This document shows, one piece after another, positions 5,801-59,668 of a DNA stretch of 64,000 nucleotides. Made by a program: the position numbers and the translations under genes. Within the stretch, counting starts at the first letter, position 1. Every line of letters begins with the position of its first letter. Source of the DNA: Andalucia godoyi And28. Lineage: Eukaryota; Protista; Jakobida. Under the pieces are notes generated by a model, which made no database searches, was not told the DNA's origin, and worked only from the letters and a program-made list of their open reading frames with translations. The stretch covers positions 112,981 to 176,980 of the forward strand of contig VRVR01000027.1 in the NCBI GenBank assembly GCA_009859145.1. The letters run 5' to 3'.

Positions 5801-6169
5801 TCTGACTTCTTTCACAAACACCTGGAAAAAAGTCTTTTGGATTGGAATGTCCCCCGGAAGGATATTCGGTTCAAGCACCCCAATTCTCTTGACTACCTCC
5901 TCCACAGACAACCCTTTGGCCGAGTCCGTTCGCAGCCTAGTGCACAGCACAAACACAGACTCTCTGGAAGCATCCTCTGCCGAAATCGTAGGAAGCAGCG
6001 GTGATTCCCCAAGTAAACTCGTCTGATTTGCACTGTTGGCGATGTTGGCACTGGAATCGTCGTTGGCATTGGAAGCAAGTCGATTCGCATTTTCCAACAG
6101 CTGCGTGCCGTCTTCTTCATCATTTTCGTTATGACTGCCATATGCACGGTACAAAAGATCACTCATCAT
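2846..6169 (-). CDS. P-type (class II-like) cation-transporting ATPase, PEELP type
   Basis: 1117-aa ORF; first ATG at 6169. Motifs LTGESEP, IPEELPL, DKTGTLTEN, EDPLRDDA, SGDH, AGDGLNDVPSL and about 10 hydrophobic segments. Confidence 0.93.
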   Translation of the reverse strand: MMSDLLYRAYGSHNENDEEDGTQLLENANRLASNANDDSSANIANSANQTSLLGESPLLPTISAEDASRESVFVLCTRLRTDSAKGLSVEEVVKRIGVLEPNILPGDIPIQKTFFQVFVKEVREPMIILLLFVAVLYFALAEIGEALFVSVMIGAVICIEVWNERRSKAAVDLLRCTVKPMGMVRRNGALMKVESSEITLGDILVLKAGQRLGADVRLFSSTGLEVEEALLTGESEPIAKSASFDPTLDAAQGHPNVLDARTDPSFSDYVPRNVLLAGSSVVKGSGVGVVYATGGSTRVGQLGKCLSDVSKPKKTPLQQIMKKFAFRFSLCAVSFSVAVFFGLLFLTDASWKVALLSSLSLAFVTIPEELPLLIKSVLAVGAYALSKSHNIIMKQVQSVEAIASCSVLFSDKTGTLTENKLSLAKAVTFKKLLDFPEFSVASSHELNAAAASEEITKSVVNEAGVPTGSLLDAWALLSADLSYLTDVLAGEFSIRDVQFQDPFDDAVFAALQSASSMNGNSSESLLATLRTVVGASDISPALVSQYERLRGRLLAFQHTSSQSSADSDSKAGLSASLLIKRAPEDVVAKCGRLRTETEGDVALGSHTKALILSYVSSLAGRGFRLIALAQQDTRFPMHLEIRAENGALVGAEESLTDFLRDRCQDGSFVFLGFLMFEDPLRDDAANAVDWIRSAGVHVVVVSGDHSRTVQSALGTLVKQPERHADLSVLTEAGIGPFVLDCHAVLLSFSTHSGDTEMSFNAFLIDSLSQVVNALKDRVPGSEHQVTNHKGAIVGVARATPDVKLSLVRMLRDAGHRIIVAGDGLNDVPSLKDADVGIAMGLNSADLAKEVASVVLADNNIASVAESIRAGRRLYVNLFKAIIFYLAAKIAIAFAFAVCIVAGVGSPFHSTHLIVAEAFMDVGASLSFLFMPIDPSFALRGPHVYPLLFQVRFLGKIVAACAFGFFFTIIFSFMTGCNFDTSHCRSGEGHERAQSAVFLGWMIVHVFAALIIAQVDSPITFRCSCDLRAMVSVFKDPVSRSGYRNWALWTLAAMLFVFAAFVLPFVSVFLSLVPLSFGQVALVLLFVALGCLIVSSTRVFFHRVWYMS

Positions 6170-6646
6170 GTTTTCGGAAAGTCGATTTCGTACAAACAAT
6201 GAATGTTCAGGCTGATTTCTGTGCTCACGGTCAAAGAGCTTTGTCAGAAATCGGGAAAGCTTGATCTTTACGCACGTTTTTTGGTCTGGCGACAGGCCGA
6301 CAGCGCATTCGAGTCATTGCGAAATACAGTATGATGTGCTCAAACATCGAATAGTGATGACTTCCGTTTCAACCCTGCTTTTCGCTTTCACAATCAGTTT
6401 TGAAACACAACAACGTGATCAGAGGCAATGTGCGTTCATGGAGAGTATTCTGGACAACACTTTACCTTCACAACGGCAATTCTCGAGATCAGTGGCTAAT
6501 TCACGACCGCACTCAAACGAAGAGATCCCAAATTGGAACTTCAAGCAAAGTCCAATGGTGACCTGCTTGACGTGCGCATAACACTATAAGCGATGCCAGG
6601 CAGTCTGCCACGATTTCTTTTTTTGATTTTCTGAAAAACCCAAACC

Positions 6647-7733: not shown

Positions 7734-9020
7734 ATGGCTCAAAACCAACACGCCCGACAAACAGTGTTTGTAAGGGTAGACAATTCGTTCGTCCGTGACC
7801 TGCAGCTGGAAGTTGGATGTTTGAAAATTCAAACTGCAGCGATCTATCTTGCTGACAATGCTCTTCCAATCATCGTGAAGCCTACAAACCGACGTAGACT
7901 TCCTGTCGGGGTAGCATGCATGGAGTGCAGAAGGACTCATACGGCGTGTTGTGCAGAACGGCCATGCAGAACGTGCGTTCTCCGTCGTGTTGAGTGTGTC
8001 GATCACCCACTCAAGACCCAGTCGGGAAAGAAACGAGGCCGTCCTTTTGCATCGATGTCGTCAAATAAGGTCTTTTGGAGTGATTGGACTCAGAGAACTT
8101 CCAATGATTCTATTTGTTTAAGCTCATCTGCGACATCATTCAACACGAAGGCGAGTGCTTCAGAGAATCGACTGGAAACTCTACCCACAATCCTTCATTC
8201 TCAAGATGAAAGGTCTCCAGAATCGAAGATCGTCGCCGCATCCACAATCGCAGACCGTGAAGCCGTTGTGCATTCTTTCGTCGATCTCATTCCTTGCGAA
8301 TTGCATCGGTTGTCGAGGATTCCTGGAAGGAAGTTCCCTGCAGTGCTTCCTCATTTGTCGAACCACGACCAGAACGTCGCGAGCCGCATGATCGCTACCC
8401 TTGGCGATATTTGTCAGAAATGTTGTGCATTTCGCGATGAGCATTTGTCCTCGACAGATAGTTTGTCTTCAGTTACAGTATCCAGCACTTCATCCAGTTT
8501 GACAGGGCGTCCTGCGCACGAAGCGGAGGGTTCCATGAAAAACGCGATGGGGGAGGTGTGTACCCGACTCTTGCGATCTCTTGCTTTTCAATCTTTGCAG
8601 TCTCAGGTCGAGAACAACTTTGAAGATGCTGCAACACATTCTCATCCCGGACTAGTCATTGTTACGGACAGGAACGGTTCTGTGATCTGGGCGTCAAAAC
8701 ACGTTGAATATTGGAGCGGTAAATCGGTTTCGGCCGTTCTCCATCAGCTCATGCCGCTTGCATCGAGCATTCCGGATAATCGAATGGATGACTATTTCCT
8801 ATCTTGGTTCACTTCTGTGAACGATCCCTTTGTGATCCTTCAGCGGTCGGTGGACGTCAGTTTGCGAGGCGAAGTGCTGCATTCTGCCACTCTCTTCATT
8901 CGCGATACGAATCGGATAGCGCAGTTCCTTGTCGTTTGTTATGTTCCGGTGCGCGATGTGAGCATCTGGAATTCTCATCGAATAGCACGTGCCGAAGATT
9001 CCTATCATGGCGACCCATAA
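7734..9020 (+). CDS. Zn(II)2Cys6 binuclear-cluster transcription factor with C-terminal PAS-like region
   Basis: CMECRRTHTACCAERPCRTCVLRRVEC fits CX2CX6CX5CX2CX6C (7917-7997). It is followed by KKRGRP, a Ser-rich linker, and PGLVIVTDRNGSVIWASKHVEYWSG (PAS-like). Confidence 0.8.
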   Translation: MAQNQHARQTVFVRVDNSFVRDLQLEVGCLKIQTAAIYLADNALPIIVKPTNRRRLPVGVACMECRRTHTACCAERPCRTCVLRRVECVDHPLKTQSGKKRGRPFASMSSNKVFWSDWTQRTSNDSICLSSSATSFNTKASASENRLETLPTILHSQDERSPESKIVAASTIADREAVVHSFVDLIPCELHRLSRIPGRKFPAVLPHLSNHDQNVASRMIATLGDICQKCCAFRDEHLSSTDSLSSVTVSSTSSSLTGRPAHEAEGSMKNAMGEVCTRLLRSLAFQSLQSQVENNFEDAATHSHPGLVIVTDRNGSVIWASKHVEYWSGKSVSAVLHQLMPLASSIPDNRMDDYFLSWFTSVNDPFVILQRSVDVSLRGEVLHSATLFIRDTNRIAQFLVVCYVPVRDVSIWNSHRIARAEDSYHGDP

Positions 9021-11536: not shown

Positions 11537-13012
11537 TCAACGAGCGGCGCTGAACACACGCTTGGACCAAGGTAATTCATCGTCGTTTTCGTCATTCGCA
11601 CTATCTGCTCCATCCGTTGCTGCCGTTTCGCGATCTCGTTTCACTCGCACATTTGTAACGAGCATTGATGAGAACCAATGCTTCCGCTTCTTCGACTTGA
11701 CAGACATAACGGGCGATACGGAGTTCCACTCAGCAACTCGTGCTCTGTGCGCACTCAGACCATGAATAGAAAGCCGCAGTCGAAATGGAGTGCGCATCCC
11801 AATGTTGATAAATGAAAGCAACGTAGGCTGAAACCTGTCCGTTCTTCCAATCCACGTTGACGTCTCCTTTCGCTTCAGATGAAAAGGACCTCCGCAAGTG
11901 AACCGAAGTCCCTCTTCCATGACGTCAGTTGAAACTTCATGACCAACTAGCGACAGCTCCATCTCATAACCGCAAATCGTTGTAAGGTCCAACTCGTTCA
12001 AAGCTGGCAATTCAAAAGGATTCAATTCCATTCGCAACTGCATAGTGTACATTGACGTTTTGTACCACTCCGCATCTTCCGGCTGATTTTTCGATACCGC
12101 GGATGTCCAGTTGTGGAAAGACGTACGTCCCGTCTTGGTCTGTACCGACCAACCACACAAGCCAGGAATCGCTGGAATAGACCAATCCAACGCAGGATCT
12201 AAAAAGTCAAACTCGTTGGTATTTTCGGTAGCGTCACGTGTTGATGGAATCTTTTCTGGTTGGGTGTGCGGCGACCCAGCTGTACTTGAATGTGAACTAC
12301 TCGATGACGAACCAGACGGTCCATTGCTCATCGAAAACATTCCGGGGTTGGCTATCGATTCCCCACTATATGCAGAGGCAATCGCCATGACATCCGACGC
12401 GGATAAAGAAACGAAGTGAGGAATTGAAACGGGAGGTGGAAGAATCGTAGTTTGATTCACTGCAGACGCGCTGATACAAGAGACTGGGACGCGACCCATT
12501 TCAAGAGTTCCCAGCCGTGGTTGCTGCGGTCGCAAAGGTTTGATAGGAGTATCTGGCGGAGTTGATACTTTGCAAGCTGCATCGTTCGAATTTGCGAGCA
12601 GTGGAAACATCGGCATTCGATGGCTTCCTGCTTCAGGGTGCGCGGCAGTCATTCCAGCACCATCGAAATCGACTCCATGAAATGCATTGACAAACGAATG
12701 TTCAACCTCGGGATTTGCAGTTTGTGCTGCAAATTTGTACAAGACGTTCGTTAAGAGAGTTGGTGATGAGTCGTATTGAGTGGAACAATCCGAGGGAGAG
12801 ACGATGAAATCATCGGGAAGAAGAGTTGGAATCAAGGTTTGATCAACCCTCATGCCACCAACATTGAAATTGCTGTTCACATTCTGTCTCTGCAAGAGTT
12901 GCTCAACTCCGGAGTGATCGCCATGATGGAGGATGCGAAGCCGGATGAGCAGGTCTTGAAAGGCGCTGCAGCTTCCGATATCCGAGAGGGTGTTTTGAAG
13001 ACCGTTTTGCAT
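11537..13012 (-). CDS. Uncharacterised protein, WYKTS family copy 1 (putative DNA-binding protein)
   Basis: Long ORF, first ATG at 13012. Low-complexity Ser/Pro N-half; C-terminal region VQTKTGRTSFHNWT...WYKTSMY...FRLRL...SPVMSVKSKKRK, shared with the 24882-26009 gene. Confidence 0.75.
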   Translation of the reverse strand: MQNGLQNTLSDIGSCSAFQDLLIRLRILHHGDHSGVEQLLQRQNVNSNFNVGGMRVDQTLIPTLLPDDFIVSPSDCSTQYDSSPTLLTNVLYKFAAQTANPEVEHSFVNAFHGVDFDGAGMTAAHPEAGSHRMPMFPLLANSNDAACKVSTPPDTPIKPLRPQQPRLGTLEMGRVPVSCISASAVNQTTILPPPVSIPHFVSLSASDVMAIASAYSGESIANPGMFSMSNGPSGSSSSSSHSSTAGSPHTQPEKIPSTRDATENTNEFDFLDPALDWSIPAIPGLCGWSVQTKTGRTSFHNWTSAVSKNQPEDAEWYKTSMYTMQLRMELNPFELPALNELDLTTICGYEMELSLVGHEVSTDVMEEGLRFTCGGPFHLKRKETSTWIGRTDRFQPTLLSFINIGMRTPFRLRLSIHGLSAHRARVAEWNSVSPVMSVKSKKRKHWFSSMLVTNVRVKRDRETAATDGADSANDENDDELPWSKRVFSAAR

Positions 13013-13696
13013 GCTGTTCAGAGGTTGGTTGTTCCGCACCGACTGAAGAATATTGGAAGTTTCAATATATCAAGCGAAAAACTGAATCAATGAGAATGGA
13101 AGGATCGCGAAGTGTTTTTGAAGCCTTCGAGAAATTTCACAGAGTATCTTTAGACTGCACTGGAAGAAACAACCAAAATAAATAATCAAAGCAACTCAAG
13201 CGGACCACTTTGTTACGCTGCAAGATCTCGGCCGTCTCGAGGTAACGGCTTGCTTGCAAATTGCAACCGCACTTCCCTGTACATCGGACACCGCAATTCC
13301 AGCACGGTGGCGATTTGAGATTCCCCCGGTTTTGCTCGTCCAGGTTCCACTCGCGAAACGAAATTACCAATGTTTCCCGAAATAGCCGGAAATAGCATGC
13401 CGGATTAGGATGCTTCCCGGTTTGCGGTCGGAGTTTGCCGACTTGAAGTGCCATTTGAACTTCCGAAGACAATGAAATCCGCATCTCGTGGAAACTCCTG
13501 CCAGAACTGCAACTCGCACAAGGTTGTTGCCCACACAAGAATTTTCACTGATGTTTCAAGAGACGATAAAAAATATGACAGAGCGGAGCAAATTCCGTGG
13601 AGAGACTCATTCCACAAAATTCTTCGCAAGCACGCGATGAAGACATTCGTCTAATTCTCATCTTTGAGACTTCGCATTGAAGGCTTGATTCGCATT

Positions 13697-14784
13697 ATGT
13701 TCGATCTCTACAAAACAAACATTTGCAGCAGAAGTATGAGCAGATCAGTGCTATGCAAACCCGGGTGGCTGCGTTGCGGCATTGCGATTGTGCCAATGGC
13801 TGCCTACCTTGCAACATCCCAAATAACCACTGACAACATTCTGTTCGACGCTGTTCTGTTTGCTCTCCCCGCGTTTGCCATCCAAACCATATTGTATTTT
13901 CACGGTATGTTTGTTGAGCGGATCCTTGTATGCCTTGTACCACACACGGTCGATGTTGATACGCACGCATTATGCACTTGCAAGGTCACTGGAGACAGTG
14001 CTGCAACACACGACGGACGATTCGGAGAACTCGGGACGGTCTCGGATGTCCACGAACATCACACACAATCTGGCTCGACTGCAGAATCTTGCGAATGAGA
14101 TACCGAAGTTTGTCCCTTCGACGGCGCTGCAGAAGATGAAGAACGGTTGTGATGGGTCGCCACAGATGATCAACGCCGCTGTCATGTTCTTGGACATCGA
14201 GAACTACACGGGTCAGTTGGCTTCTCGGCGATTCATTGGCGCTCCTGCAGCAGATCAGCAACGCGTTTGATGGATTTGCAACTGAAATTGTGGCCCAACA
14301 AGGTGTCGTTGACAAGGTTGTGGGCGACTGCCTCATGTGCTTCTTTCCTGCACTCGCCGATACTTCCCACGACGTACGCTCTTGTCGCGCTGCCATCTCT
14401 TGTTTTGAGGTCCTCACCAACCTTCACGAGTCATGGCAGCGACAGGGACACGACTTGCTGCAGATTCGAGTTGGCATTGCTTCCGGGGCTTGTTTTTGTG
14501 GCAATTTCGGAGCTCCTGGTCATCGAGTACAGTACACGGTCATGGGCGATGTCGTCAACATCGCTTCCCGATTGCAAGGGCTTGGCAAGAGCTACGGAGA
14601 AAGAATCATCGTTTCGCGGTCCGTCGTCGAAGGCATCATGTGGGATCCTCTTGTTTCCTCGTGGACGGCCTCGGCACTTGGGAGGGAAACCCTACGTGGA
14701 AGGGACTCCGTGTCCGACATATATTGCCTGAAGCAAGCAGTCCCATCTGCTGATGTCCGACTTTTTCCAGTTGTGGCTCAATGA
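13697..14784 (+). pseudogene. Membrane-anchored class III adenylate cyclase-like gene, broken by at least two frame changes
   Basis: Three overlapping frames give a hydrophobic N-terminus, then KFVP...AAVMFLDIENYT, then DKVVGDCLMCFF...IRVGIASG...GNFG...YTVMGDVVNIASRLQGL. Breaks lie near 13905-14000 and near 14220. Confidence 0.75.
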
Positions 14785-15971
14785 ATGTGTGAACTCTGGT
14801 GGTGACAGAAAATGCTCGTCATCGAAGATCTGCAGCTTGCTTCTGACTGATGAGAAGTAATTCTGCAACGAACATGATCGAGAAAATGAAAGAAAGAGTG
14901 GTTGTGAGGAGGCTTTTTTTAAATGTATTCTAAATAAATGCTTGGTTTGTGAATGGTTTATAAATAGCTGGTCATTTTTGGAGATTCTTTCTGGTTTACC
15001 GCGCTGGCGGGGACTCTATTCCTGGACGTTCGCCGGAGCAGAGCTTGCGTGCACCTTCCCAATTCGGATCAGAAAAAATATAAATGGTCGGGTTGCTGAT
15101 TCTGCTTGCATTCTTGTTCGGTGCGTCAGCAAATAACGAGCATCGGTCCAATCAAATTTAAATCGAGAAGAACGATGGACAATGGGCTATAGATAGTCCG
15201 GTATCAGTAACCTTTGGTTGAGTGAGAGCCATTATTGGAACTGGAACCCCGGATCTGTTTCTCGACTATCGACATCATCATCGTCTGCTTCGAAACTGTG
15301 ATCCCACGAAGAAGTCAGCCATTTAACGTCGAAAATGACGAGATGCGGGCATTCATGGCCTCGCACTCGCACGTTTTGCATCTTGAAGAGAATGAACTCT
15401 GCATGTTCGGATGGCCGTGCCGAATCGATAGCATGCAAAGCTCTGACGAAGATTGGAGCTCATGAAATTCCAGTCTTCGCAGATCCTCCCGTCCACTTCG
15501 TTGGCAGCAGACGGAAAATCGCTTGATTCCTCTTTGTGAAACCTTCGCCTGCAGGATGATTGGAAGTGCGTTGCGATGGTTACGATGGCGGGTTAAGCCG
15601 TCGTTGTTCGATTCTCTCTCAGGGCACCTGAATCTCGCAGAACCTTACGTTTTGAGTTCACAGCGCTGGGTGGGCAGACTGCGAATGCAGGCTCTGGAGA
15701 AATCCAGGAATGTCTCCAGGGAGGGCTGATGCAAGCACAAACCGGCATGGAACAATCGGACAAAGAAGGCAAGGCACGATTCCACTTTTGGCACATCCAA
15801 TTGAATCTCCAGCTATTTTTGGAGCCCTCTGCTTGCACTAAGGATTACGGTAGGGGACCGACACCGTTGGGCGTGCAACTTCAACCACATTCAGAAAGAG
15901 AAAATGTGCAACACCGGCCAGCGCGCCCCTGCAGGCAGTCTTTTCGATGATCAAGTTGCTAACGGCTTCCA

Positions 15972-16382
15972 ATGTCCAAACCAGTGTCTGCTTTCTACAA
16001 GGAAGTGATCAGGACCACACTGCAGACTTGGGAGCATATCCTGGGCTCCAATTCGTGGGCGAAATTGCCAACATTGTGTCGGTATCTTGATTGGGCTGAT
16101 CATTTGCTCGAAGCATTTGATCTGTTGTTGGATTTGAATGAGCATTCGGTCTTGGATTCGGCAATGTTCCGGTCGGTATGTGAAAACACTGGCCGGTATA
16201 CCACGTGCACACTTGAAGATGAGGATCATCAAATGTTCAGAGCTTTGTTACTGATGCTTCGGGAAAAGATGACCAAGATTCAGGATGGTAAGAACGATGT
16301 TCTGCACATTTCCAACCTTTTGCGCGATCTCGATTCGAACTTTGAAGAAGCCATGATCCGATATGTTCTGCCCATAATGTAA
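15972..16382 (+). CDS. Hypothetical helical protein, possibly the 3' remnant of a decayed gene spanning about 15235-16382
   Basis: 136-aa ATG-initiated ORF with protein-like composition. Upstream co-linear short ORFs are separated by stops. No motif recognised. Confidence 0.3.
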   Translation: MSKPVSAFYKEVIRTTLQTWEHILGSNSWAKLPTLCRYLDWADHLLEAFDLLLDLNEHSVLDSAMFRSVCENTGRYTTCTLEDEDHQMFRALLLMLREKMTKIQDGKNDVLHISNLLRDLDSNFEEAMIRYVLPIM

Positions 16383-17029
16383 ATAGAATTTCATTTGTGT
16401 GTCTGATCTTGCTCTCTTGATTGAAAAATCAGCTCACACGAAAGTGTTACGGATACTGAAATTCAAGTGCGAGAATGAAGATCTACGTGAAGGCAACAGT
16501 CGGCATCCTGAAGTGGAGACGGGAGCAGACCAAGTGTAAAGAGGGCGACAGACAACGTCCACCTCGGACCGACACATTTCAGCTTGTCCAAGTTGGCATT
16601 CACATAACTCAACAAGAAGCTGTATAAACCCTTATTGCTCAGATTCGGACGAATGGGCATACTGACACGTTATGTGAACTCGGTGAGCCAAGTCACGAAA
16701 CGTTGCAAATCATGAAAGTCTCTCATGATTTTTAGTGCATGCTCTACGAAGCTTTCGAAAAGGAGCTTTGTGTACCCACTGAAGAAGCTGCCGTATGCCT
16801 TCCTGCTTGTCCGATTAGACGTCGATCATGATGGCACAAGCGGGCTGGAAGGATTCTCATAATCGCAGAGGAATCAAAACGTGTCTGTGGCTGGTCGACA
16901 TTAGATAAGATTCGTAGAGCCGACTTGCTGTTCACACTCCCTTTCAAGAAAGCAGCTGGCGATTGCAACGCCATTTGAATGGAAGGGAAGGCGTGAGTGT
17001 CACAAATGATAGGAAATCCAGTTCATCAT

Positions 17030-17650
17030 CAGCTAATACATTCACGAAGCAGTAAATCGTTTTCACAAACACTCTGCGGCAGACGAAGAATATAAAATAC
17101 ATCCGAAAAGCAAAACTCTCCACCGTTACAAAACATAAGGAATATTTCTGTCAATCCAAGTGCTTTCGTTGCGATAAAATGACGACGCAATTCGAAATCA
17201 CGAGATCCATAGACGAGCCTGCAACATCTGCAGGAACCACATACTCACTGAAGCCCTGGACAAATCGAAGATTCACATATGGATACTGCAATACATCCTG
17301 GCAAAAACGATCAACATGGCATCGTGAAACGTCGAGTCGCTCGACGGTTATGTCCACTCCCGTTACAGACCCGGCAGGTCCGACCATCACAGCAATCCCT
17401 ACCAGAACCGGGGTCGGAGGTCCAGATTGTGCAAGTCGTCGATGCCGGTGTGAAGAAGCGTCACACAGTCATGGTACTTGGACAGTATTTCATCCGGAAT
17501 ACGATAGAGGATGGAGCGTAGTCGAGCAGGAGGAGGACCGGAGTACAACACGCGGACGTTTTCAAGTCGGCAGGTGAGCCAAGCACCTTGTCATAATGGC
17601 GCTGCACAGAGTCGTACAAAGCATCTGCGGAGTCGTTGTCACCTTTCGAC
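17030..17650 (-). pseudogene. arsM: Arsenite S-adenosylmethyltransferase (ArsM/AS3MT) pseudogene
   Basis: Manual minus-strand reading across several frameshifts: DSVQRHYDKVLGSPADLKTSACCT / PPARLRSILYRIPDEILSKY / LDL..PGSGRDC / VGPAGSVTGVDIT...NLRFVQGF...SMDLVISNCVVILS / EIFLMFCNGGEFCFSDVF...LLRECIS. The blocks are in ArsM order. Confidence 0.75.
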
Positions 17651-17980
17651 GTTGAACGCGATACCGCAACGCTATCTATGAAGGGAAAAAAATTCGAGTA
17701 CAGAGAAGATACGAAATTGAGGGAAACACGGAAGAAAGAAAATAGATGGAAGAAATTGGGAGAGATTTTTGGATGAGCAGGATATCGAGAACACTTTTTG
17801 TCCCCTCTGTGAGTCGGTGAAATCTGAGACTCATGGGGAAGTTGCGAGTTCGGGGATTTTCGATTTCACCAGGACTTTTCTGCGAATTGCATTTCTTGTT
17901 GTCGATTCTTTTTCCTTGTTTTTCCTCTGCTTTCTTTATTTCTTCCAACCTCCTTCCTTCCTGCATCCACTATTCCAGTC

Positions 17981-19851
17981 ATGAGTTCGTCTGTTCCGAA
18001 TGATGAAATCCAGAGGCTGATCGCGAAAATCGAGCAGTTGAACCGTGCAAATGAGAAGAAACGCGAAGAAAAAGAACGAACCTAATTTGCTCTTGAACAA
18101 GAACGGAAGGAGAAAGAATTGACGCAAATAGCCGTTGATCTTGAAAGACAAGAGAAGGAGAAGGAATGCCAAGAGAAAGAGGCGGAGCATCAAAAAAGAC
18201 TTGTTGGCATTGGGGTCGTCGCGCAGCCACACCACCAGTCTGTTCACCACGAACGTCTCTCTTGACTATTTGTTTCCCTCTCTTTCCAACCTTCCGTACT
18301 GGGATGATTTCCAGGCAATGTAGAGCGAGACGGTAGGGGCGCTTCCTTCGGACTCATGTTCTGAACCACTCCTTCAAGACCAGTTCCGGTTGTTCATCAT
18401 GCGATTCCTCTCCAAGCACGGCGACATGCATCTGGTGGATTTTTCGCGGAGTGGTCTCTATGGACAGAACCAAAAGGTGGATTTGCTGATCTGCATCGGT
18501 CGTCTAGCTCTGCGGCGACCCATATACTCTGGATCAAGCATCGCCGGGGAACTCAAGGGATCCGATCGACTCGACGGCACACCAAAGTCCAAGCTCTCCG
18601 AGGCCATACAACAAGTGTATCAGCGATTTGCGCACATTGTTCAGGAATCCGGAATTTCTCGCCGGGTTTGCTGGGGATGTGCGTGCAACCGGAATTTCAT
18701 TGTTTTTGTTTGTTTGCGCATTTTCGATTCCGAGTCTGGATGGGACTATGAACTGCTGGAAACTGCGCCCATTGCACTTCAAGAGGACGGTATGAAAGGC
18801 CTTTGATTCTTGTTGTCCAGCGATCCACATGCCTTGTGCGGTTGGAATGGTGCGCCGCCACCAGTTGTCTCTGAGTTGTCTTCTGGAATCGCGCGCTCGT
18901 TGTCCATTTCGTCGAGACTGGAATTGACTGGAATGCTGCAATGTGCACCGGTCCATGGTATCGGGAAGATGGATGCTGTGGAGCTGGCGACCGCGACTCT
19001 TGATGCGACGAACTCCATTGTTGTCAAGTGTTTTCCGGCATCGAAGCAAGCGGAATGGACCACCGAACTTGGAGCACTGCAGGAACTTTCCAGAATCGAC
19101 TGGGGCCGTCATCGTTTCTGTGTGCCCACTCTCTTGCATTCCGAACAGTCCGATCATGGAGCAATTCTGTGCACTGCGCCTGTAGGCGTGCCGTTGCCGC
19201 TTGCATCGTGTTATCCGGACCGCTCCCTCGTTTTCTGCACGGAACTTTTGCAGCAGTTGACCAGCATCATACTACAGTGCAGCCAGAATGGCGTGCATCA
19301 CATGGACATTGATTCGCAGAATGTGGTGCTGTTGGAGGAGGCGCAAAGCGACTCTCTGTTTCCCATATGTTTGATTGACTGGGGCGGTGCGTCATTCATA
19401 CAAAAGCGAAATGCAGAATTTCACTATCACGCAGCCTTCTCGCCCGACTGGCTGGATGCGGTGGCATCGTTGGCCGATCTGTCCCGATGGCGAGCGACTG
19501 CAGGTCTGCTTGCAGCAGGCCATGTTGACCACTATGTGCATCGCTTTCGACGACGTGCTCTCGTGGCTGCCGCCAATGGCAATCGTTCTTGATAAGAAAA
19601 ACCTGCTACAGGATTCGCATACCCGTGTGCGAGCAAAAACGGAATTGTTTTCGATTCGAACGGAAATTGTCGCTCATCTCCTGGATGTCTCGCTTGACAC
19701 GCCTGTTTTGAACGGCCTTGGACCTCTTCGTTTGTTTTTCCAGCAGCTGAGGGATGCGGTTCCATCACTTTTTGAACTGGAAGAGCGAAGTAGTGCAGAC
19801 AATGCGATGGCAGTTCGAATACGAGAGTTTTGCGTGACATCGAGATTGTGA
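17981..19851 (+). pseudogene. Crinkler/CR-like effector pseudogene: coiled coil + PD-(D/E)XK nuclease-like domain + protein kinase-like domain
   Basis: ATG 17981 opens an E/K-rich coiled coil. After a frameshift near 18195 one frame reads through stops at 18321 and 18804: KVDLLIC...IAGELKG...AIQQVYQRF, then IVVKCF...ELGALQEL...VPTLL...PVGVPL...HMDIDSQNVV...LIDWG. A second shift near 19500 gives MLTTMCIAFDDVLSWLP. Confidence 0.7.
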
Positions 19852-20130
19852 ATGTTGGCGATCCCGAGAACGCAGGGTGCATCTGGCTACGTGTTATGGG
19901 TCTCTCTGACCCATGATTCTGCTCCGCGTTGGTTTACAATCTCATTCTGGTTCCATAGAGATCGTGTGAAAGGACAGAACATGATCGCGATATTGTCTTT
20001 CGAAATAAACAGTCATGTCCCGGCATAGATGAAACTTGATCAATTTGGCCTGAGCGATGACAAAATGCGCTCTACAACGTTACAAAAAGAAGAGCACCAT
20101 CATCTTCCACGGTTTATTTGAATCCTGGTT

Positions 20131-20822
20131 TCATCGACTTGCCGCACGGTCGTCCATACCTGGTCTCGTACCCTCATTGTAACCGTCTTCTCCCGTTTGT
20201 TGCGCCCATACCTCTGCCTCTGCCTCGAGGAATGCTTCTCGACACATTTCAAATTCCTCTACACTCTCAACTTTTCCGATTTCCTCAGCTTTCACCACGA
20301 GCGCTTCATTTTCCGAGCAAAGACGAACCCATTTTCTTGTTCGTCGCGTTTCTTCATTGATGTATTCTTGCATGGCATCGCTCAACGTCGTCGGTGCTCC
20401 CACACGCAACTTGGCGTCGAGGAATGCAAGAAAAGACTCTGCTTGCATTGACCGTCTGCTTGGGGCAGTTTGTGCTCTCGGCTCGATTGTCGCGTCTTGA
20501 GCATCCGGATTTGTGTACGAAGAGCTCCTGTGTCGACCGCCTGTGCTCTCTCGAACTGTCATGGACGGATCAAAACCCTTCTTGGAGTGTAGCTTTCGTC
20601 GTGGCCAGACGCTCCCTCAAATTACTCTATCGAGGCAAATCACAATCGGTCGCGACAATAGTATGGAATTAGAAACGCACATCGACCATTTTGCAGTAGA
20701 TAGAGAATTGCGTCCTCCTGTGACGCAACATCACCAGGTTGAATGCTTGAGGAGGGTCTCAACTCCCTGTCGCGATAGATGAACGCCATGACTTGCGTGC
20801 GCAATTTCCATACCTCTTCCAT
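20131..20822 (-). pseudogene. Hypothetical decayed coding region
   Basis: Two protein-like ORF pieces (20640-20822 and 20131-20562, the latter acidic/helical) separated by stops. No family recognised. Confidence 0.25.
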
Positions 20823-20825
20823 CTG

Positions 20826-21732
20826 TCACCATTCGAACTTCAGATCTTCTTGAGACAGATCCTGAAATTTCAGCAGCCGATCCTGACAGACTCGTTGGAG
20901 AGACTGCATCATGAGCTCTACATCCTCGATAATGTTGTTCCGAAATTGTCTCAGCGGCGCCAAGATGCCATCAGTACAACGCATTTCATCTTCTAATTTC
21001 TTTGTGAACTCATCTATTTTCGCTTCTTCTTCGATGCCGGACCGCTGGACCAAAGTAAAATAAAAAGATGCAGCAAAGTGTTTGACAACAAAATATTCGA
21101 TGACACCCATCCAAACGTAAATGTCGCACATGAACTTCATCTTTCCTCGATAGAATGCAGGAGTACGCTCACGCAGACATCGAGCAACCTCTGGAAACAC
21201 GAGATGCGTTTCATAAAAGTCTTGGACAGAGGCAATGAATTGCGAATTCATCCACCGTTTCGCAGGCTTTTGTTCGAATGAAGAGGATTTGAGAAGTCTG
21301 TGTAATCTCTGAGTCACAGCTTTTGAAGAAATGCTTGTCAGCGTGCCGCGCATGAGTGCCACAGAATTCCACTTTTCGAGATGTGCAATGGATTGGCCGA
21401 TTCCCTCGCAGCAAGCGCAGACGCATTGGACCACGAGATTGACTGGCTTCGACGAGTAAAGACACGACAACCGCGTGAGTTCGAAATGCTCAAACCCCGC
21501 ATACTTGCAATGAGCGAAATAGGATGATTGCGGATGTTCGTGAAGATACAAAAGTCTGGATTTCGAAAGCGAGAACAAATGTGGTGGAGAGCGGTGGGAT
21601 GGCAAGAAACGCGGCTTTCTCCTTTTCGAACAGCCTTTGCTACAGGAGGAGCATATTCTTCATCCGATGACCATTGCCCCTCAGATTCATCTTCTGAGGA
21701 TGAATGCTCCCCATGATCGTCATTCGAGGACA
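20826..21732 (-). CDS. Hypothetical protein, frame change near 21560-21600
   Basis: ATG at 21732 (MSSNDDHGEHSSSEDESE, acidic) overlaps a 259-aa helical ORF in another frame. Confidence 0.4.
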
Positions 21733-22138
21733 TTTGGGAAATCTGAAAGAAAATTGAGAGGAAAAACTTGCTTCCTCGAGCACAATTCTCCGAGTTTTGA
21801 GGAAAGGTCGAAGTTGAGTACGCGTTCTGGGATTCCCAAGGATTGCGACTCATTTTTTCCCTCACTTTGAGCAAGATGCCAGAAAGCCGGCCAAGGTCCA
21901 CTGCTGATCAGAAGCCGAACAAAAAATGTGCCAGCTGAAAATCCCCGCCACAGCCGGCGTGTTGTTCAAATTTCAATCCAACCTCGGCATCAAGTGAGGC
22001 GCGGCTTCCTGCTCGCAGCGAGTCCGCTCAGTGGTCAACTGGCACTCTTTGAAAAAGTTTCCCCGGGGCTTTCCAACTCTGAATCGTTTGTCGGTTGCGG
22101 GAAACCCCTCGTAAGTGGATTGTCGTAGCGTCATATTC

Positions 22139-23897
22139 ATGAAGCTGTCCTTCTCAACCTGGTGCCTAATATTGACGATTCTACATTGCGCTCATCTGGT
22201 TTCAAGTGCTGGTCTTACCTGGTCCATTCTTGCAAATTCAATACTGTCGCCGTCCCCTGCTCCCCGGCGTGACGCTGCCATTGGGCACTTGTCCGCTCTC
22301 AACAGTCTGATCCTGTTCGGTGGTCGCACTGGTGGTGGACAAGCGCTTCGTGATACATGGCTATTCAACCTTGCGTCTCTAACTTGGAACGAACTTTCTT
22401 CCAATTCTTCGATGCTGAGCGGCTCTCCAGACGCTCGATTTTCGATGGTCTACGGGGTGTCGGGCACTGGCGCGTTCTACATTTGCACTGGGCAGACAAA
22501 CGTTAACGGACGAGTGTTTTCAGACACGTGGATATTTTCTCCAGCATCTTTGCAATGGTCGGCAGTTTCTGTGCATGGCGACGTTCCCCCCGCGAGATAC
22601 GGCTCCGCGGGAGGGTTCTTCCGCTCTCCCAATCAATATTTGCTTTTCCTTACTCACGGGTTTGACAAGAATGTTCAGCGATTCAGTGACTCCTATATCT
22701 TGGACACGACGACACGGGAATGGAGCAGAGTCGTGGAAGATCGGTCCAGCAATGCATACGATCCGCGGATGCCTCATGCACGATGTCTGCACTCCGGTGT
22801 TGCGATCGGGACCACTGAATTTTTGATTTTCGGAGGCTGTCTGAACGGTCAAGGATCTGCTGCGGGCCCTTGTCCTTCGAATGATGTGTGGATATTTTCC
22901 TCGAGTCGGAGATCTTGGAAACGAGGCGGACAGTATTCACAATCGCAGTTCGTTCCTACTCCAAGAGTGTATTCGTCCATGGTGTACTTCGCTCTGGCAG
23001 ACACGGTTTTGGTCTATGGTGGTGACACCAATGCTGGAAATATGATCCGCGCAGCGGCGACACCCACCGATGAAGTTATACTGATTGATGCCAGCGACGG
23101 TAACGCTCCCTTTCGTCGACGATCCGCCTCAAATCCGCCGCCTACCGTGCTTGTTGGCGCGTCGATGACAGTGGTGTATGTCTTTTCCCCATCCCGCTCT
23201 TCTATTTCCTTATCTCCTATCCCCGCCGTCATGTGCAATCCTGCTACTAATCCTTTTCCCAAGCGACAGAACGATGAACAACTCCGAGTTCGCTGTATTA
23301 TATGGACTGTCCGGGTCGCTGTGGCGCCTATCTCTCTCGGGATCATTGAGCGATTCCCCTGCACTATCCGGGAGTAATTCGTACATTTCTTTTGTGATTC
23401 TTCACGGTGTATTTGCATTCATCGGCTGGGGAGTGCTGCTGCAAGCTGGTGCGTTGATTGCTCGATACGGAAAGCAGATGGTGGGAACGAAGCAGCCAGC
23501 GCTGTGGTTTCGGCTGCACCGAGGTCTGCAGATAACGGGGCTCACATTTGGGCTCGTAGCGTTTGTGCTCGGTGTCGTCTCGGCGTCTGGAGCAAAGCAC
23601 TTTTCGTTTGCTCACGGAATCATAGGACTTATTATCACGATTTTGGGTGTAACGCAACCATTGAATGCTCTGTTCCGACCGCATCCCGGGACTCCGAAGC
23701 GACTAGTTTGGAATTATCTGCATTGGGGAACTGGTCGTTTGGCCCTCATCTTGGCACTTGCCAATATTTCTCTTGGCTTGTTTCTTGCTGTGGCACCTGA
23801 TCCTATTTGGATCGCATGGTTTTGCCTCGTTCTATTGCTCATCATCGGATACATCACGTTGGAAATTCGGAGAATTCGGTCTCTCAAACATCGTTAA
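22139..23897 (+). CDS. Signal peptide + Kelch beta-propeller + cytochrome b561 (ferric-reductase-like) membrane protein; join(22139..23175,23264..23897)
   Basis: Hydrophobic leader MKLSFSTWCLILTILHCAHLVSSA. About six Kelch repeats (LILFGG..., PPARYGSAGG, FLIFGG, VLVYGG). The b561 part has heme-ligand His blocks LHGVFAFIGWG, WFRLHRGLQ, FAHGIIG and WNYLHWGTGR. Splicing restores the frame exactly. Confidence 0.88.
23176..23263 (+). other. 88-nt spliceosomal intron
   Basis: GTATGT donor, pyrimidine-rich body, CTACTAAT branch-like site, TTTTCCCAAG acceptor. Phase 2 splicing gives ...MTVV-DRTM... in frame. Confidence 0.85.
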
Positions 23898-24003
23898 TAA
23901 AAGTAGGAGTCTCCTGCGTCTGGTCCGATTTCTTTTTGGTGTCATGTCGAAGGATCGCTGGGAGCATTCGGAGCTGTAAATGCGCCCACGTGAGCTACTG
24001 AAA

Positions 24004-24034
24004 TCGAACTCAAATTCGCTCAAAATCAATTTCG
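24004..24034 (+). repeat. Degenerate copy of the 31-bp inverted-repeat unit at 59820-59850
   Basis: TCGAACTCAAATTCGCTCAAAATCAATTTCG vs GCGAACTCTAGTTCGCCTAAAATCGACTTCG: 24/31 ungapped identities by hand count. Confidence 0.35.
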
Positions 24035-24042
24035 GCAGCAGC

Positions 24043-24314
24043 AATTGTTTTACATTTACAAATTCCAGAGATTTGCTGTTGGTGACCAAAAGCCAATAAC
24101 CATCATGTCTTCCGCACAAGCTACGGACTACATGACGCCACCCGCCTGTTATGAGAATGTTCTCAGAGTATGGGCAATCACCACAACATAAAGAACAAAA
24201 CAACACAGGTCTTCGACGGCCAGCTTCCCCTCGCTGAGCACCTTGGCTCCGTACCCGAAGGTCCGAACACCAGGACAATCGACATGTAGGCAAGCCACTC
24301 TGCGCCACCTTGGA
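24043..24314 (-). pseudogene. Decayed fragment of an ABCB-type transporter TMD, paralogous to 48979-49208
   Basis: Shared blocks CCATCATGTCTTCCGCAC and CACCAG(G/A)ACAATCGACATGTAGG(C/A)AAGCCACTCTGCGCCACCTTGGA. Translation QGGAEWLAYMSIVLVF / YGAKVLSEGKLAVEDLCCFVLYVVVIAH...*QAGGVM*SVACAEDMM contains stops and an indel. Confidence 0.75.
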
Positions 24315-24881
24315 CTAGGAAATTTCAAAAATGGAGAGCCGAATTCGCCTTTTCCTCAGTCTTTGCAATCACGAAAGTCTCCCGAAGTGCCCTCGATTTC
24401 AGATAGAGGACTTTGGACACGACGGAACCAAGGGAAGGTGCTGTTTGCATTACAGTGTGCCGAAAAGGAGGAAGCACAGCAGGAAGATCGTTGAATTGGA
24501 TCTTTCGAAATGTTGGACAACATTTCCCCCAAACCAAGCCAACAGATTCGGCTTTCATACGAGCATTTGTGGCTCCCTCGACAGAATATTCAGATTCTTG
24601 TGTGGATTCCTCCAATCTGCTTGCATTCGTCTTTGGATAAGCAAGCAGATGTGGGTTGACGTTTTTTGAAAATGTCAGGTGTGTCCGACGATTCGTCCCG
24701 GGGACAGCTGCTCCTTGGGAGGTGTTGTTTCCGAATGCTTCTGTCTGCATTCCAGCAGAATGTAAACTCAGTGACCATAGAGCTTGTGAAGCGGTCAAGG
24801 GATTCAACAAAACCTGTCCCCGCCGGTACCTCTTCCCTTCCTCTTTTCAGTTTATTTCTTTTTGATTACCATGTTACATTG

Positions 24882-26009
24882 ATGTCTGCATTACAAAATA
24901 GTTTACTGATGAACAGGGCTGTTTCATATCCACAGACGAACCATACGGATCCAAATGCACTCTCGAACTTGCTGAGCACAAATTGCTTGGTTCCCAGACT
25001 CCTTCCAAATCTCATTCTGGACCATGACCTCTTCGAATTCGTGGACTTTTCTTCTGAAGAACTCGATGCTGTTTCTCCCCGGCATCGAGAATGCTGTCAA
25101 CTTACGGATCTCTCCACGAACTGTGCTGCAGATTCTCAGACATGCTCCATTTCTGATTGCTCCCCAATGGTTCCTTGTATGGAAGCAGACGCCCAACTGT
25201 GACAACTCTCTTCTCCAGTGATCGCCTGTCAAGCGTACTCCGATTGTGCCCAAGACTGGGTCATCAGAGACTCGGCAGTCAGCAACGCTAGCATACACGT
25301 TCAGTCACGGTGTTCAAAGACGAACTTTCGAAACTGGACAGAGCCTTCTGGACCCTCAGACTTTTACAGAAACGCTGTCTCCAACAGGAATCTTTCAAAA
25401 ACGCCCGACATCGATTTTGCGGATTTGCAATGGTACAAGACCTCCGTGTATTCTCTTCTTGTGTCTGTGGCGTTTCCAACATTCGATTTATACACCACTG
25501 TATCTCAGGAGGCCGTGGCTTCTCTTGGCTCTTTGCGGTGCTCGCTGGAGCTGACAAACGTCGATGGCAAAGTGATGAATCACGCACTGCTTCGTGATGG
25601 AAAGTCGACAACAGGAAACATTGTGTCAACTGCAGAGGAGCATTCCATCTTTCCAGCAAGTCTTCTGGAATACCGATTAATTCAAAAGGAAACAAAGCAG
25701 AATACAGGATTTGTGACTTACCATGGCGTTGTGGGCCCGTTTCGCATTCTGTTGTATTCCACGTACTCAAAGGGAAAGTTGAGGCCAAATCGATTCAGGA
25801 TGTCCGCCTTCGCAGACACGCATGCTCAAGACAGGCAACTGGAGACGTCCTCACCGAACTCGGAATCTGCAGACCTCCAATTCCTCTGTCAGATTTGGAG
25901 TCCCACTTTCTTCATCAAGAGCAAGAAGCCGATGCACACCGCAGCGAAACACAAGAGAATGGCACAAGGCGATTCTCACCATGGATTGTTTGGGCCAGCC
26001 GCAAAATAG
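24882..26009 (+). CDS. Uncharacterised protein, WYKTS family copy 2; probably join(24882..25176,25219..26009)
   Basis: Two in-frame ORFs separated only by TGA at 25200. N-part LVPRLLPN resembles LIPTLLPD of copy 1. C-part VQSRCSKTNFRNWT...WYKTSVY...FRMSA...SPTFFIKSKKP. Alternative upstream ATG at 24672. Confidence 0.7.
25177..25218 (+). other. Predicted 42-nt intron
   Basis: GTATGG donor and CTCTCTTCTCCAG acceptor. Its length is a multiple of 3 and it contains the only in-frame stop. Confidence 0.55.
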
Positions 26010-27509: not shown

Positions 27510-28964
27510 TCAGCCAAGCACACTGCAGCACACAACAGTGAGTGTGAATGCGACAACAGAAGTGACGGCAAGGATGCCAAAAACCGGATCAGTGGACTCC
27601 ACATCCTGCCACGGAACATGAACATTCATACCGAATGCCGAGGTCACGATTTTCAACAGAGGCATTCCTGTTGCAACAATTCCCATTCGCTTCATCCAAT
27701 TATTCGTCATTTGCGAACTTCGCGACACAGAAATCGACATTCGGGAGAGGTAGTTCGAATTGGCTTGGGTGAGCATTTCGCACGATCGCTCAATCTTGTG
27801 AAGGCAGGAATTAATGTGTTCGGACAAGCCCCGAAGGAGCAGTCTAGCACTGTCAGACGATTCCTTGCTAGACATCGAATAATCGTAATCGGACGTTTCG
27901 AGTGCATGAAGATTGATTGTCGATTCTAGATGTTCGTGAGATCGCGAATCGACCAAGTTGTCATCCTGCTGTGTGAGCCCAATCGCCGTCCACTTTGCTC
28001 TGGACAACTGCGAAACGATCTTTTGCTTTCCCGTCAACAGACGCCGCAGCACTACCAACTTCTTCCGTGAATTGTTGATTCGAAGAAGCAGATCAGATTG
28101 TTCCGATTCTGGCAATGCAAAAACCAGTTTTTCGATGCACTCGCATTCACACAATATTGCGTCAATCAGCGGAATGACCTCATCAACAAACACATCCAGG
28201 ATGGAGAACAAGATATCAAAAGGTTTATCAAAACCTTTGAAACGAAATCGAATCAGTACAGTACACAGACCGGGAATCGGTTCCGCGTGAATTGTGACTA
28301 CGATACGGTTCATCAGAATGAAGTGCACTGGAACACAGTGTTCCACATCATCGGCATCATGTTGCAACGGACGAACAAGAATCGACGAACATGCATCGTT
28401 TTCAATAGGAAACGTTTCAAACTTTTCAGTCACATCAAAATCCAAGCAGTCTTCCATCGTGAGTTCACGCAAGGCCAGCAGACGACCGAGGAGTTGGAAA
28501 TCAACACTATCAGTCGTCTGAACATCAATCCAGTGGCAAACTCTCGACGACCGATCACTTGCACAAGAAACAATCAACGCAGAGTGAGCTTCCACAAACC
28601 CTCGGCACGAATCATAAAAAAGAGGTTCTGAAGATGACGAAGAAAGATACATGACGTGCGAACCATCTGCCAGAAGTGTCTCAAAAGTGTGGTCATGATC
28701 AACTCCGCCGTTGTAGAAAACAGATGCCAAAGACATGTGGCGATTCAATTTTGGAGAGTGTTTGCAGTCCTCAACCGTAGAGGAGCGAAAAGATGGAATC
28801 GCTGTATCCCCACCACGAATTGCAGCAGCCGCCAGTTCCATTCTCGTCGTGTCCTCCTCATCAGCATTTCCTACAGGGAATGCTACGAATCGTTGCGGAT
28901 TGTTTTCAGAGGGCTCCGAAGAATGTGCTTCCGCCCTGTCGGAAACTGGACAGCAGGAAGACAT
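27510..28964 (-). CDS. corA: CorA/ALR1-like Mg2+ channel, copy 1
   Basis: WIDV...LRELTMEDC, LFSILDVFVDE, coiled stalk, TSAFGMNVHVPW plus a final TM. First ATG at 28964. Confidence 0.88.
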   Translation of the reverse strand: MSSCCPVSDRAEAHSSEPSENNPQRFVAFPVGNADEEDTTRMELAAAAIRGGDTAIPSFRSSTVEDCKHSPKLNRHMSLASVFYNGGVDHDHTFETLLADGSHVMYLSSSSSEPLFYDSCRGFVEAHSALIVSCASDRSSRVCHWIDVQTTDSVDFQLLGRLLALRELTMEDCLDFDVTEKFETFPIENDACSSILVRPLQHDADDVEHCVPVHFILMNRIVVTIHAEPIPGLCTVLIRFRFKGFDKPFDILFSILDVFVDEVIPLIDAILCECECIEKLVFALPESEQSDLLLRINNSRKKLVVLRRLLTGKQKIVSQLSRAKWTAIGLTQQDDNLVDSRSHEHLESTINLHALETSDYDYSMSSKESSDSARLLLRGLSEHINSCLHKIERSCEMLTQANSNYLSRMSISVSRSSQMTNNWMKRMGIVATGMPLLKIVTSAFGMNVHVPWQDVESTDPVFGILAVTSVVAFTLTVVCCSVLG

Positions 28965-29182
28965 TTCGGACTGGCTGCTTCCCAAGAAGAAACTGGTGAA
29001 AAAAAGACAAACACGAAGCAGCACTGTGCTGGAAAAGCGAGTTCATGCCGATGAAGCTGAGAGGGTTTGAGGCCACAACGCTTGACCTGTTGAACCAGTG
29101 CTGTCCAAGCAGTCGGAACGGGCTTCTTCCCGATTTAATTGCGAATCTTCGTCAATCCAAATTTGTACATTGATTTACCCAA

Positions 29183-38982: not shown

Positions 38983-39711
38983 GTTGGTGGCCTGGACTTG
39001 AAGAATGCGGGAAAGGGGGTTCTGAAAATGTGAGGCTATTAAGGAAAGTAGCGGGAAAAGCAGGGAGGGCGAGGGAGCGTGAGAAAGTGAGTGAGAAAAA
39101 CGAAAAGTTGGAGAGAGGTTCGTTTCGTCATCAACGCCACAATCGATATCGGGCTTTGAAAGATCCATTTCGAAAATGTTTTGGAGATGTCTGAGCAAAC
39201 CGGATGATACAGTCCCAGTCAAAAAATAGTCGGATCAGATTCGGCTGTGCCGAAATCTTGAACCGGTAACAGGCAAGACTGTGACAGAATTGGTGCAGAA
39301 TTGCCAAAAGCAATGGATTCGTGAGCAGTCTCTGCACGACCACCTCGCATCCCAGCAATCTGAGCAAGCAAACGAAACGGGAATTGTCAGCTGCATGAAT
39401 CACGCCCGAGTTGCTGGACGCCGCGAGCTGCAAGTGCTTTCCTCGTTTTAAGATCTGCGAAAGTCATTCAGTCCCTCGTGAACAAGAAATAAACTTCTAA
39501 GACACATGTTCAAGCGACCAAGCGAATGTCTCCCCGAAGGCTAATCTCCAATTTTACGACGACAGGGAACTCTAGATCACTCAAAAGTACACAGCGCGAA
39601 TCGAGGAATATTGCTAAGAATCATGTAACGTCATGTCATTATCTAATGCCATTATCAGTGATGCTTGCCATGACAGCAAGAGATCTGTCAACAGAGAGGA
39701 AGCAATTTCTG

Positions 39712-50073: not shown

Positions 50074-50168
50074 GGACTAGGAAATTTTCAGACATTGAGT
50101 GCCGGCGTACTGTCTGACTGCAGCCCGAGTCCAGACTCCAGAGAAGTTGAGGCTAGGAAATTTCAGAC
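50074..50168. promoter_or_regulatory. Duplicated motif GG(A)CTAGGAAATTT(T)CAGAC in the divergent ABCB / P-ATPase intergenic region
   Basis: Copies at 50074-50093 and 50151-50168, with a third near-copy at 24312-24327. A regulatory role is inferred from position only. Confidence 0.3.
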
Positions 50169-50314
50169 GGCGGAGAATTTGTCCAGCGCGGCGGCACCAT
50201 CGGGATTACCTGATATGGAAGCCCCCGTTTTTTTGTGTCAAAGCAAGACTGTCCCGGATGGGATTCGAGCGAATTCCTTTTCGGAATTGCCCGTGTTTTG
50301 CAGTTGCCAACACG

Positions 50315-59561: not shown

Positions 59562-59668
59562 CTTCGATCTTCATAATGCTTCACCAATAGCTGAAAAATG
59601 GACAACACGCAGAAGGGAAAAACAAAAAATAAGTCCACCCAGATCCTTGGACAACAAAATGAGCCGAC

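Follow-up and report, generated by a model that had tools for sequence, protein, structure and literature searches.

A divergent jakobid protein family with a predicted Ig-like beta-sandwich domain: a candidate branch of the p53-like/NDT80-like transcription factors

Transcription factors of the NDT80 type have been described from fungi, animals and Dictyostelium, MYRF being an NDT80-type factor of animals. Jakobids have bacteria-like mitochondrial genomes and are hence central to debates on early eukaryote evolution; to our knowledge, almost nothing is known of their nuclear gene regulation. Here we analyse a 64,000-nucleotide stretch of the Andalucia godoyi contig VRVR01000027.1 (the window), which carries two genes, A and B, encoding proteins with a shared conserved domain of 175-250 amino acids (aa). 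On balance, we lean slightly towards the view that this domain is a new, highly divergent, lineage-restricted branch of the p53-like/NDT80-like immunoglobulin-fold (Ig-fold) transcription factors. A very divergent branch of a known fold class is a better description of it than a new kind of DNA-binding domain.

Genes A and B and their protein family

The features of the two genes, including the two open reading frames (ORFs) of gene B and the domain limits given by the hidden Markov model (HMM), are as follows.

11537..13012, reverse strand: gene A, an uninterrupted frame of 491 aa from the ATG
11651..12217, reverse strand: family domain of gene A (aa 266-454; HMM envelope), a predicted all-beta sandwich
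12047..12067, reverse strand: WYKTSMY motif of gene A, within the nearly invariant core D/E-W-Y-K-T-S-V-Y
11687..11716, reverse strand: SPVMSVKSKK of gene A, the predicted final beta-strand and the beginning of the invariant basic tail (family consensus SPPFxVKSKKPK)
24882-26009, forward strand: gene B as first drawn, two same-frame ORFs split by a TGA
24882..25199, forward strand: N-terminal part of gene B, 106 codons, in the same frame as the domain ORF
24987-25049, forward strand: gene B motif LVPRLLPNLILDHDLFEFVDF (counterpart in ANDGO_04684: IPRLLPDLILDSDFLEFVDF)
25218-26009, forward strand: domain ORF of gene B, 263 codons, free of further stops or frameshifts
25224..25964, forward strand: family domain of gene B, of the B-type, which has three insertions that the A-type lacks
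25431-25451, forward strand: WYKTSVY of gene B, the family-core motif
25899-25931, forward strand: SPTFFIKSKKP of gene B, containing SPTFFIKSKK at 25899-25928

The first-pass annotation of the window had reported a series of ordered motifs shared by 11537-13012 and 24882-26009, and all of them are present in the two genes. For VQ[TS]xxxxTxFxNWT, gene A carries VQTKTGRTSFHNWT and gene B carries VQSRCSKTNFRNWT; for FR[LM], the two carry FRLRL and FRMS, respectively. BLASTP aligned A with the domain ORF of B at 27% identity over 237 columns (E=4e-7, a single comparison), and hhalign comparison of the B-type and A-type profiles gave a probability of 99.6% and an E-value of 1.1e-24. An HMM built from other members, without the window or B-type sequences, found B at E=1.3e-26 and A at E=1.6e-54. 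A six-frame HMM scan of the window detected two copies only, A and B. In a six-frame hmmsearch, with a profile that contains B itself, the gene B domain was recovered at E=3e-133 over residues 8-254, counted in the piece from 25203 onwards.

The same annotation had noted a shared N-terminal L[IV]PxLLP motif. Both sequences exist, but their similarity is not significant alone (E=0.69), and ANDGO_02162, the A. godoyi protein found with gene A, lacks LIPTLLP. It does conserve with gene A the stretch that follows, D.[IV]VSPSD.CTQY..SP. The N-terminal PRLLP[DN]LILD..EFVDF of gene B (in B itself, PRLLPNLILD..FEFVDF) is also kept in ANDGO_04684.

The gene A protein consists of a Ser/Pro-rich low-complexity N-terminal half, the family domain, the basic tail and then an acidic tail. 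It is 45% identical to ANDGO_02162 across 85% of its length, and the two are probable orthologs. Both have TAA.D..S..DE.DELP after KSKKPK. A Pfam scan of gene A returned nothing significant; the sole match, SAP25 at E=0.013, fails the cut-off. The gene B domain is 60% identical to ANDGO_04684 and 53% identical to ANDGO_06873, and these three form a divergent subtype carrying the three insertions.

The family had been thought to have two members, and this proved too small. We searched 1.84 billion representative proteins exhaustively with an HMM of 5 sequences (cut-off E<=1e-3); only 21 clusters came back, a lower bound for the family. Among them are nine A. godoyi paralogs (ANDGO_02162, 04684, 06873, 02172, 05209, 02156, 05092, 00951 and 02725), and the remainder are unnamed metagenome proteins from JGI/IMG or Logan. 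One of the latter is encoded on a eukaryotic contig of 17.5 kb that is dense in genes, where a DEAH helicase, a kinesin and XRN are its neighbours. Word-based searches retrieved A. godoyi proteins only (ANDGO_02162 for A; ANDGO_04684 and ANDGO_06873 for B). Two metagenome scans for related loci yielded no confirmed locus. All named members are annotated as hypothetical proteins, and neither the family nor jakobid transcription factors were described in the literature that we searched. Together, the sequence comparisons identify A and B as paralogs in a small, previously undescribed family of Andalucia-type jakobids and a few uncultured eukaryotes. At least nine paralogs are present in A. godoyi and two lie within 12 kb in the window; expansion by duplication is typical of lineage-specific transcription-factor families. 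The neighbouring locus tags ANDGO_02156, 02162 and 02172 hint at a gene cluster resembling the A/B pair.

The consensus of the 21 sequences begins W..P.IPGL..F.V.SKTGRT.FH.W....PED.EWYKTSVYTL..R.E...L.L....V.DGL.F.K.GPF...R.... and continues G.IGPFSP.KFSF.HNGKH.PFRLRL......SPPF.VKSKKPK. In the core of this alignment T55 and Y58 are invariant, with E51, W52, Y53, K54 and S56 conserved in at least 90% of members. At the C-terminal end S169, P170, S176, K177 and K178 are invariant and K175 again reaches at least 90%. Several members carry a D[AD]AF.RAA motif about 30-40 residues past KSKKPK (in the tails of P0005, P0006 and P0009).

Members are 277-1012 aa long, besides two shorter fragments of 213 and 289 aa. 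In 20 of the 21, the residues S, P, Q, N, G, A and T make up 52-67% of the sequence outside the domain, compared with 33-51% inside; the exception is P0010 (0.46 outside, 0.47 inside). Some members terminate in poly-Q or poly-H tracts. The invariant KSKKP directly follows the last strand, and most members have a second K/R cluster 10-25 residues on, such as KRDRE, RERKRGR, DRKRQR or KTKKRH; the combination looks like a bipartite nuclear localisation signal. Most of the domains are basic, with an isoelectric point (pI) of 7.1-9.6 (9.05 for B). The flanks, basic clusters and pI fit transcription factors, as circumstantial evidence.

Predicted fold and candidate function

The first-pass annotation could not assign the domain to a known family, and sequence searches bear this out. 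Pfam scans of A, B, the 21 domain sequences, ten full-length members and the profile consensus yielded no usable match to any family. For NDT80_PhoG, neither the profile consensus nor any of the 21 domain sequences gave a match at E<=10, although the filters of HMMER could conceal a very weak one, and the ten full-length members gave none at E<=0.1. Searches of PDB sequences with the 5- and 21-sequence profiles returned nothing at E<=10. No known family without a DNA-binding role was matched by sequence in the Pfam and PDB searches either.

Structure prediction was more informative. An AlphaFold2 model made from 5 sequences was unreliable (predicted local distance difference test score, pLDDT, 54) and was replaced by a run on 21 sequences. 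For residues 265-455 of A, this run produced an all-beta sandwich with a pLDDT of 85.7 and a predicted template modelling score of 0.82. The model comprises about seven long strands and short outer strands, and its strand 172-175 leads into a low-pLDDT, disordered basic tail at the end. In a Foldseek search against the PDB, the NDT80-type DNA-binding domains of MYRF were the best four of the first six matches (chains 5yhu, 5h5p and 5zhu), with E-values of 9e-5 to 5e-4 and template modelling (TM) scores of 0.48-0.53 over 177-183 of 191 residues. Also among the matches listed by Foldseek were STAT1/3/5/6 (~2e-3), velvet VeA (2.6e-3) and p53/p73 (4e-3); Ndt80 itself was absent from the top 50. 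The discarded low-confidence model had given the CP2c/LSF DNA-binding domain as its top match (E=1.6e-3), followed by p53 and VosA. The modelled domain is thus an Ig-like beta-sandwich whose nearest neighbours are the DNA-binding domains of several families, as expected of the p53-like class, and it agrees with the earlier guess of an Ig-fold domain of the p53/STAT/Ndt80 class. A and B are taken to share one fold because the profile-profile comparison (E=1.1e-24) marks them as homologous.

We compared the family profile with PDB sequences of yeast Ndt80 (1mnn_A, 63-340) and MYRF (5yhu_A, 49-224). With hhalign, Ndt80 scored 22.9 (P=0.012); 300 shuffles of Ndt80 had a mean of 13.7 and a standard deviation of 2.65, and only one of them reached 22.9. 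RhoGDI (13.9) and the p53 core (11.8), which served as controls, scored at the null level. The alignment places V.SKTGRT...PED.EW-YKTSVYTL opposite Ndt80 VESHTGRTLDLRIIPRIDRGFDHIDEEWVGYKRNYFTL, and its Ndt80 stretch VESHTGRT...HIDEEWVGYKRNYFTL contains the DNA-contact residue R111. A permissive alignment spans the whole domain, with FRLRL on HFSLHVIL and SPPF.VKSKKPK on TPPLIIRGRSPSNY.

Several results weigh against reading the domain as an NDT80-like DNA-binding module. In hhalign, the family profile found nothing when compared with MYRF alone, and an anchored Ndt80+MYRF alignment reduced the score to 15.1 (P=0.22). The best local HMMER alignment to Ndt80 (E=0.0012, one comparison) is in a different register, and the Pfam NDT80_PhoG model was not matched, even by the profile consensus. 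The major-groove basic residues R111, R177 and R254 of Ndt80 correspond to K399, R454 and R478 of MYRF (PMC5473870). In the hhalign register, the base-contacting R111 stands opposite the invariant Thr of WYKTS, with the invariant Lys adjacent; at the position matching R254/R478, about half of the members have K or R, and neither A nor B does. A TM score of ~0.5 to MYRF is borderline, and the discrimination achieved by Foldseek is weak, generic Ig-like folds scoring almost as well as transcription-factor folds. The domain of A is nearly neutral (pI 7.7), and DNA binding itself is something that we infer from fold class and architecture. Specific homology to NDT80 is a lead, not a result, and the family is not filed under PF05224 because the MYRF comparisons are not significant and the HMMER register of Ndt80 differs. 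That the family is a true, anciently diverged NDT80/MYRF homolog, and also the main lineage-specific transcription-factor expansion of andaluciid jakobids, is possible but doubtful.

In the mechanism that we propose, the domain would belong to the p53-like transcription-factor class as an s-type Ig-like beta-sandwich, nearest to the NDT80/MYRF type, and the A and B proteins are most likely nuclear, sequence-specific DNA-binding regulators. Loops at one end of the sandwich, carrying SKTGRT.FH.W, EWYKTSVY and GPFSP.KFSF.H, would contact DNA together with the KSKKPK tail. This tail and the second basic cluster 10-25 residues downstream may double as a bipartite nuclear localisation signal, and the long Ser/Pro/Gln/Asn/Ala-rich flanks may serve as activation or interaction regions. 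Duplication has expanded the family.

The model would also accommodate a generic Ig-like (E-set) sandwich that binds a protein, lipid or sugar in the style of RhoGDI, NPC2/ML or Wzt, with the family members acting as cytoplasmic scaffolds or adaptors. Most of the Foldseek top 50 consists of RhoGDI chains (E 3e-4 to 6e-3; query-normalised TM 0.38-0.42; target-normalised TM <=0.55), and interleaved with transcription-factor folds among the matches listed are NPC2, the carbohydrate-binding domain of Wzt and an Ig-like domain of AGS-C. An unrelated viral structure library yielded only generic Ig-like proteins, at low TM scores but with a similar E-value (2e-4 at TM 0.35), a caution for the use of Foldseek E-values. 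The domain has no significant sequence link to any transcription-factor family. However, the query-normalised TM scores of RhoGDI are below those of MYRF, its hhalign score equals the shuffle mean, and the genuine MYRF DNA-binding domain has these same non-transcription-factor folds among its known structural neighbours (PMC5473870). Most invariant residues, moreover, are polar or basic (K, T, S and R, with the KSKKP tail), which is not the signature of a hydrophobic pocket, and proteins of 300-1000 aa with low-complexity flanks, poly-Q/poly-H tracts and basic clusters are unlike RhoGDI/ML proteins. We consider a generic binding sandwich unlikely.

The proteins might instead be nuclear without being sequence-specific, the sandwich and basic tail binding RNA, chromatin or DNA non-specifically, for example in a structural or processing factor. 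The KSKKPK tail and bipartite-like clusters would suit any nuclear or nucleic-acid-binding protein, and the canonical base-contacting arginines of NDT80 are not clearly conserved; but many divergent paralogs with variable loops around a conserved core form a pattern of transcription factors rather than of single-copy housekeeping proteins, and the best structural neighbours are sequence-specific transcription factors. This reading appears distinctly improbable to us.

With at least nine paralogs in A. godoyi, a family that can be aligned and has a structural model offers a concrete entry point to jakobid gene regulation. If the link to NDT80/MYRF is true, the p53-like Ig-fold class would reach beyond animals, fungi and amoebae into Discoba, placing it at or near the eukaryote root rather than as an animal, fungal or amoeba innovation, and the family would be a further example of a domain that has drifted away from its Pfam models. 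If the domain does not bind DNA, it would still be conserved and new, with no more than the 21 clusters recovered from 1.84 billion proteins.

The interrupted frame of gene B and the remainder of the window

The interval 24882-26009 had been drawn as a single gene. Its two ORFs do belong to a single gene, since they are in the same frame and both parts are conserved in ANDGO_04684, but a stop codon interrupts it. To look for introns, we listed the frame-keeping GT..AG intervals across the TGA. The two features concerned are these.

25200..25202, forward strand: TGA within the frame of gene B, separating the N-terminal ORF from the domain ORF
25177..25218, forward strand: candidate intron of 42 nucleotides (nt), GT..AG (GTATGG...CTCTCTTCTCCAG), frame-keeping, which would excise the TGA

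The candidate intron has a GTATGG donor, a polypyrimidine tract ahead of CAG and a CTCTCTTCTCCAG acceptor, and splicing it out would fuse ...SPMVP with LIACQAYSD. It falls short of every one of the 134 A. godoyi introns that have been verified, their lengths being 55-756 nt (PMC7050145). A 20-nt GT..AG interval at 25199-25218 was discarded, as it breaks the frame and is too short. From the sequence, gene B may be spliced, misassembled or recently inactivated.

Inactivation would make gene B a pseudogene, a decaying duplicate, and leave the window with one working member. The in-frame TGA speaks for this, as does the annotated protein collection, in which the gene B locus has no entry whereas other window proteins do; the sole well-signalled frame-keeping GT..AG interval, moreover, falls under the 55-nt A. 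godoyi minimum. On the other hand, the 263-codon domain ORF has no other stop or frameshift and remains 60% identical to ANDGO_04684, the N-terminal ORF retains its conserved motif, and the 42-nt interval does have a GTATGG donor and a polypyrimidine tract before its CAG. Assembly errors are also possible, given a nearby cyclase gene with an apparent 1-nt frameshift. We regard a pseudogene as a tentative possibility.

In that neighbouring gene, a class III adenylyl/guanylyl cyclase catalytic domain (13860-14784) is divided between two frames, with the shift near 14218-14236; the conserved cyclase pattern returns when FLDIENYTGQLAS is read in frame 0 and LGDSLALLQQISNAFDGF is taken from frame +1. 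It was considered as a local yardstick for intron size and rejected, as no GT..AG interval near 14.2 kb restores the peptide and a 1-nt frameshift fits better. The split is likely due to a 1-nt indel, from either a pseudogene or an assembly error.

The window is otherwise gene-dense eukaryotic DNA of ~49% GC. Paralog pairs include P-type cation ATPases (2846-6199 and 50099-54034), CorA Mg2+ transporters (27510-29024 and 54206-55717) and TmcB-type TPR repeat proteins (35740-39222 and 41456-46525), one of the last also having PAS and cyclase domains. The presence of several pairs besides A/B suggests old local duplications. An ABC half-transporter at 48037-49812 has an A. godoyi mitochondrial ABCB protein as its best match apart from its own entry (74% identity). 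On one strand, two ORFs in different frames share 200 nt: a Kelch beta-propeller ORF (22115-23377) and a cytochrome b561 ORF (23178-23897). They may represent a single gene that contains an intron or a frameshift, or else two calls that overlap. A 428-aa ORF at 7734-9020 scores 20.5 bits (E=5e-4) for the fungal-type Zn(2)-Cys(6) binuclear cluster, a borderline match just short of the cut-off of 21, and is possibly a second kind of DNA-binding protein adjoining the region.

Five tandem copies of a 16-bp palindrome, GCGAACTCGAGTTCGC, occupy 59665-59854. They start at 59684, 59715, 59747, 59778 and 59820, lie 31-42 nt apart with 0-2 mismatches, and are intergenic between the reverse-strand ORFs 58068-59561 and 60289-61791. 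With up to 3 mismatches allowed, the window holds six matches, compared with 0.44 expected. This array at 59.7 kb had been put forward as a candidate binding site of the family; it was located, and nothing links it to the family.

Relation to known transcription-factor and Ig-like families

The RhoGDI and ML (NPC2) domains resemble the jakobid domain in being Ig-like sandwiches, with many Foldseek matches in the range already given. They are smaller (~140 aa), cover less of the query and show no sequence signal, and their protein architecture and pattern of conserved residues are unlike those of the jakobid family.

The p53/p73, STAT, CP2/Grainyhead and velvet domains have in common with it an s-type Ig-like sandwich and a basic segment after the last strand. 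Their TM scores are 0.32-0.45, however, and the jakobid domain has neither a zinc site nor a family-specific motif; the hhalign score of the p53 core is, as noted, at the null level.

The nearest comparison is with the NDT80/PhoG class (Ndt80; MYRF/MrfA; PF05224). The jakobid family differs from it in having no PF05224 match, in a profile comparison that loses significance once MYRF is included, in the absence of the RxDRGF motif, and in the three major-groove basic residues, which are not clearly conserved (the register being that of hhalign alone). Ten full-length members also showed no match to the Peptidase_S74/ICA autoprocessing domain of MYRF, and the family is known only from jakobid-like organisms. 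In contrast, the two domains are similar in size (~180 aa) and mostly beta, and both occur within proteins having long low-complexity regions. Motifs that resemble each other weakly appear in one order in both: S.TGRT; EW..YK..Y.TL; [KR]xxF[SA]...F.L.[LV]; and a final strand with [IV][KR][SGA][KRS][KSN]P after it. MYRF is the best structural match to the family domain, with a TM score of ~0.5 over nearly its whole length.

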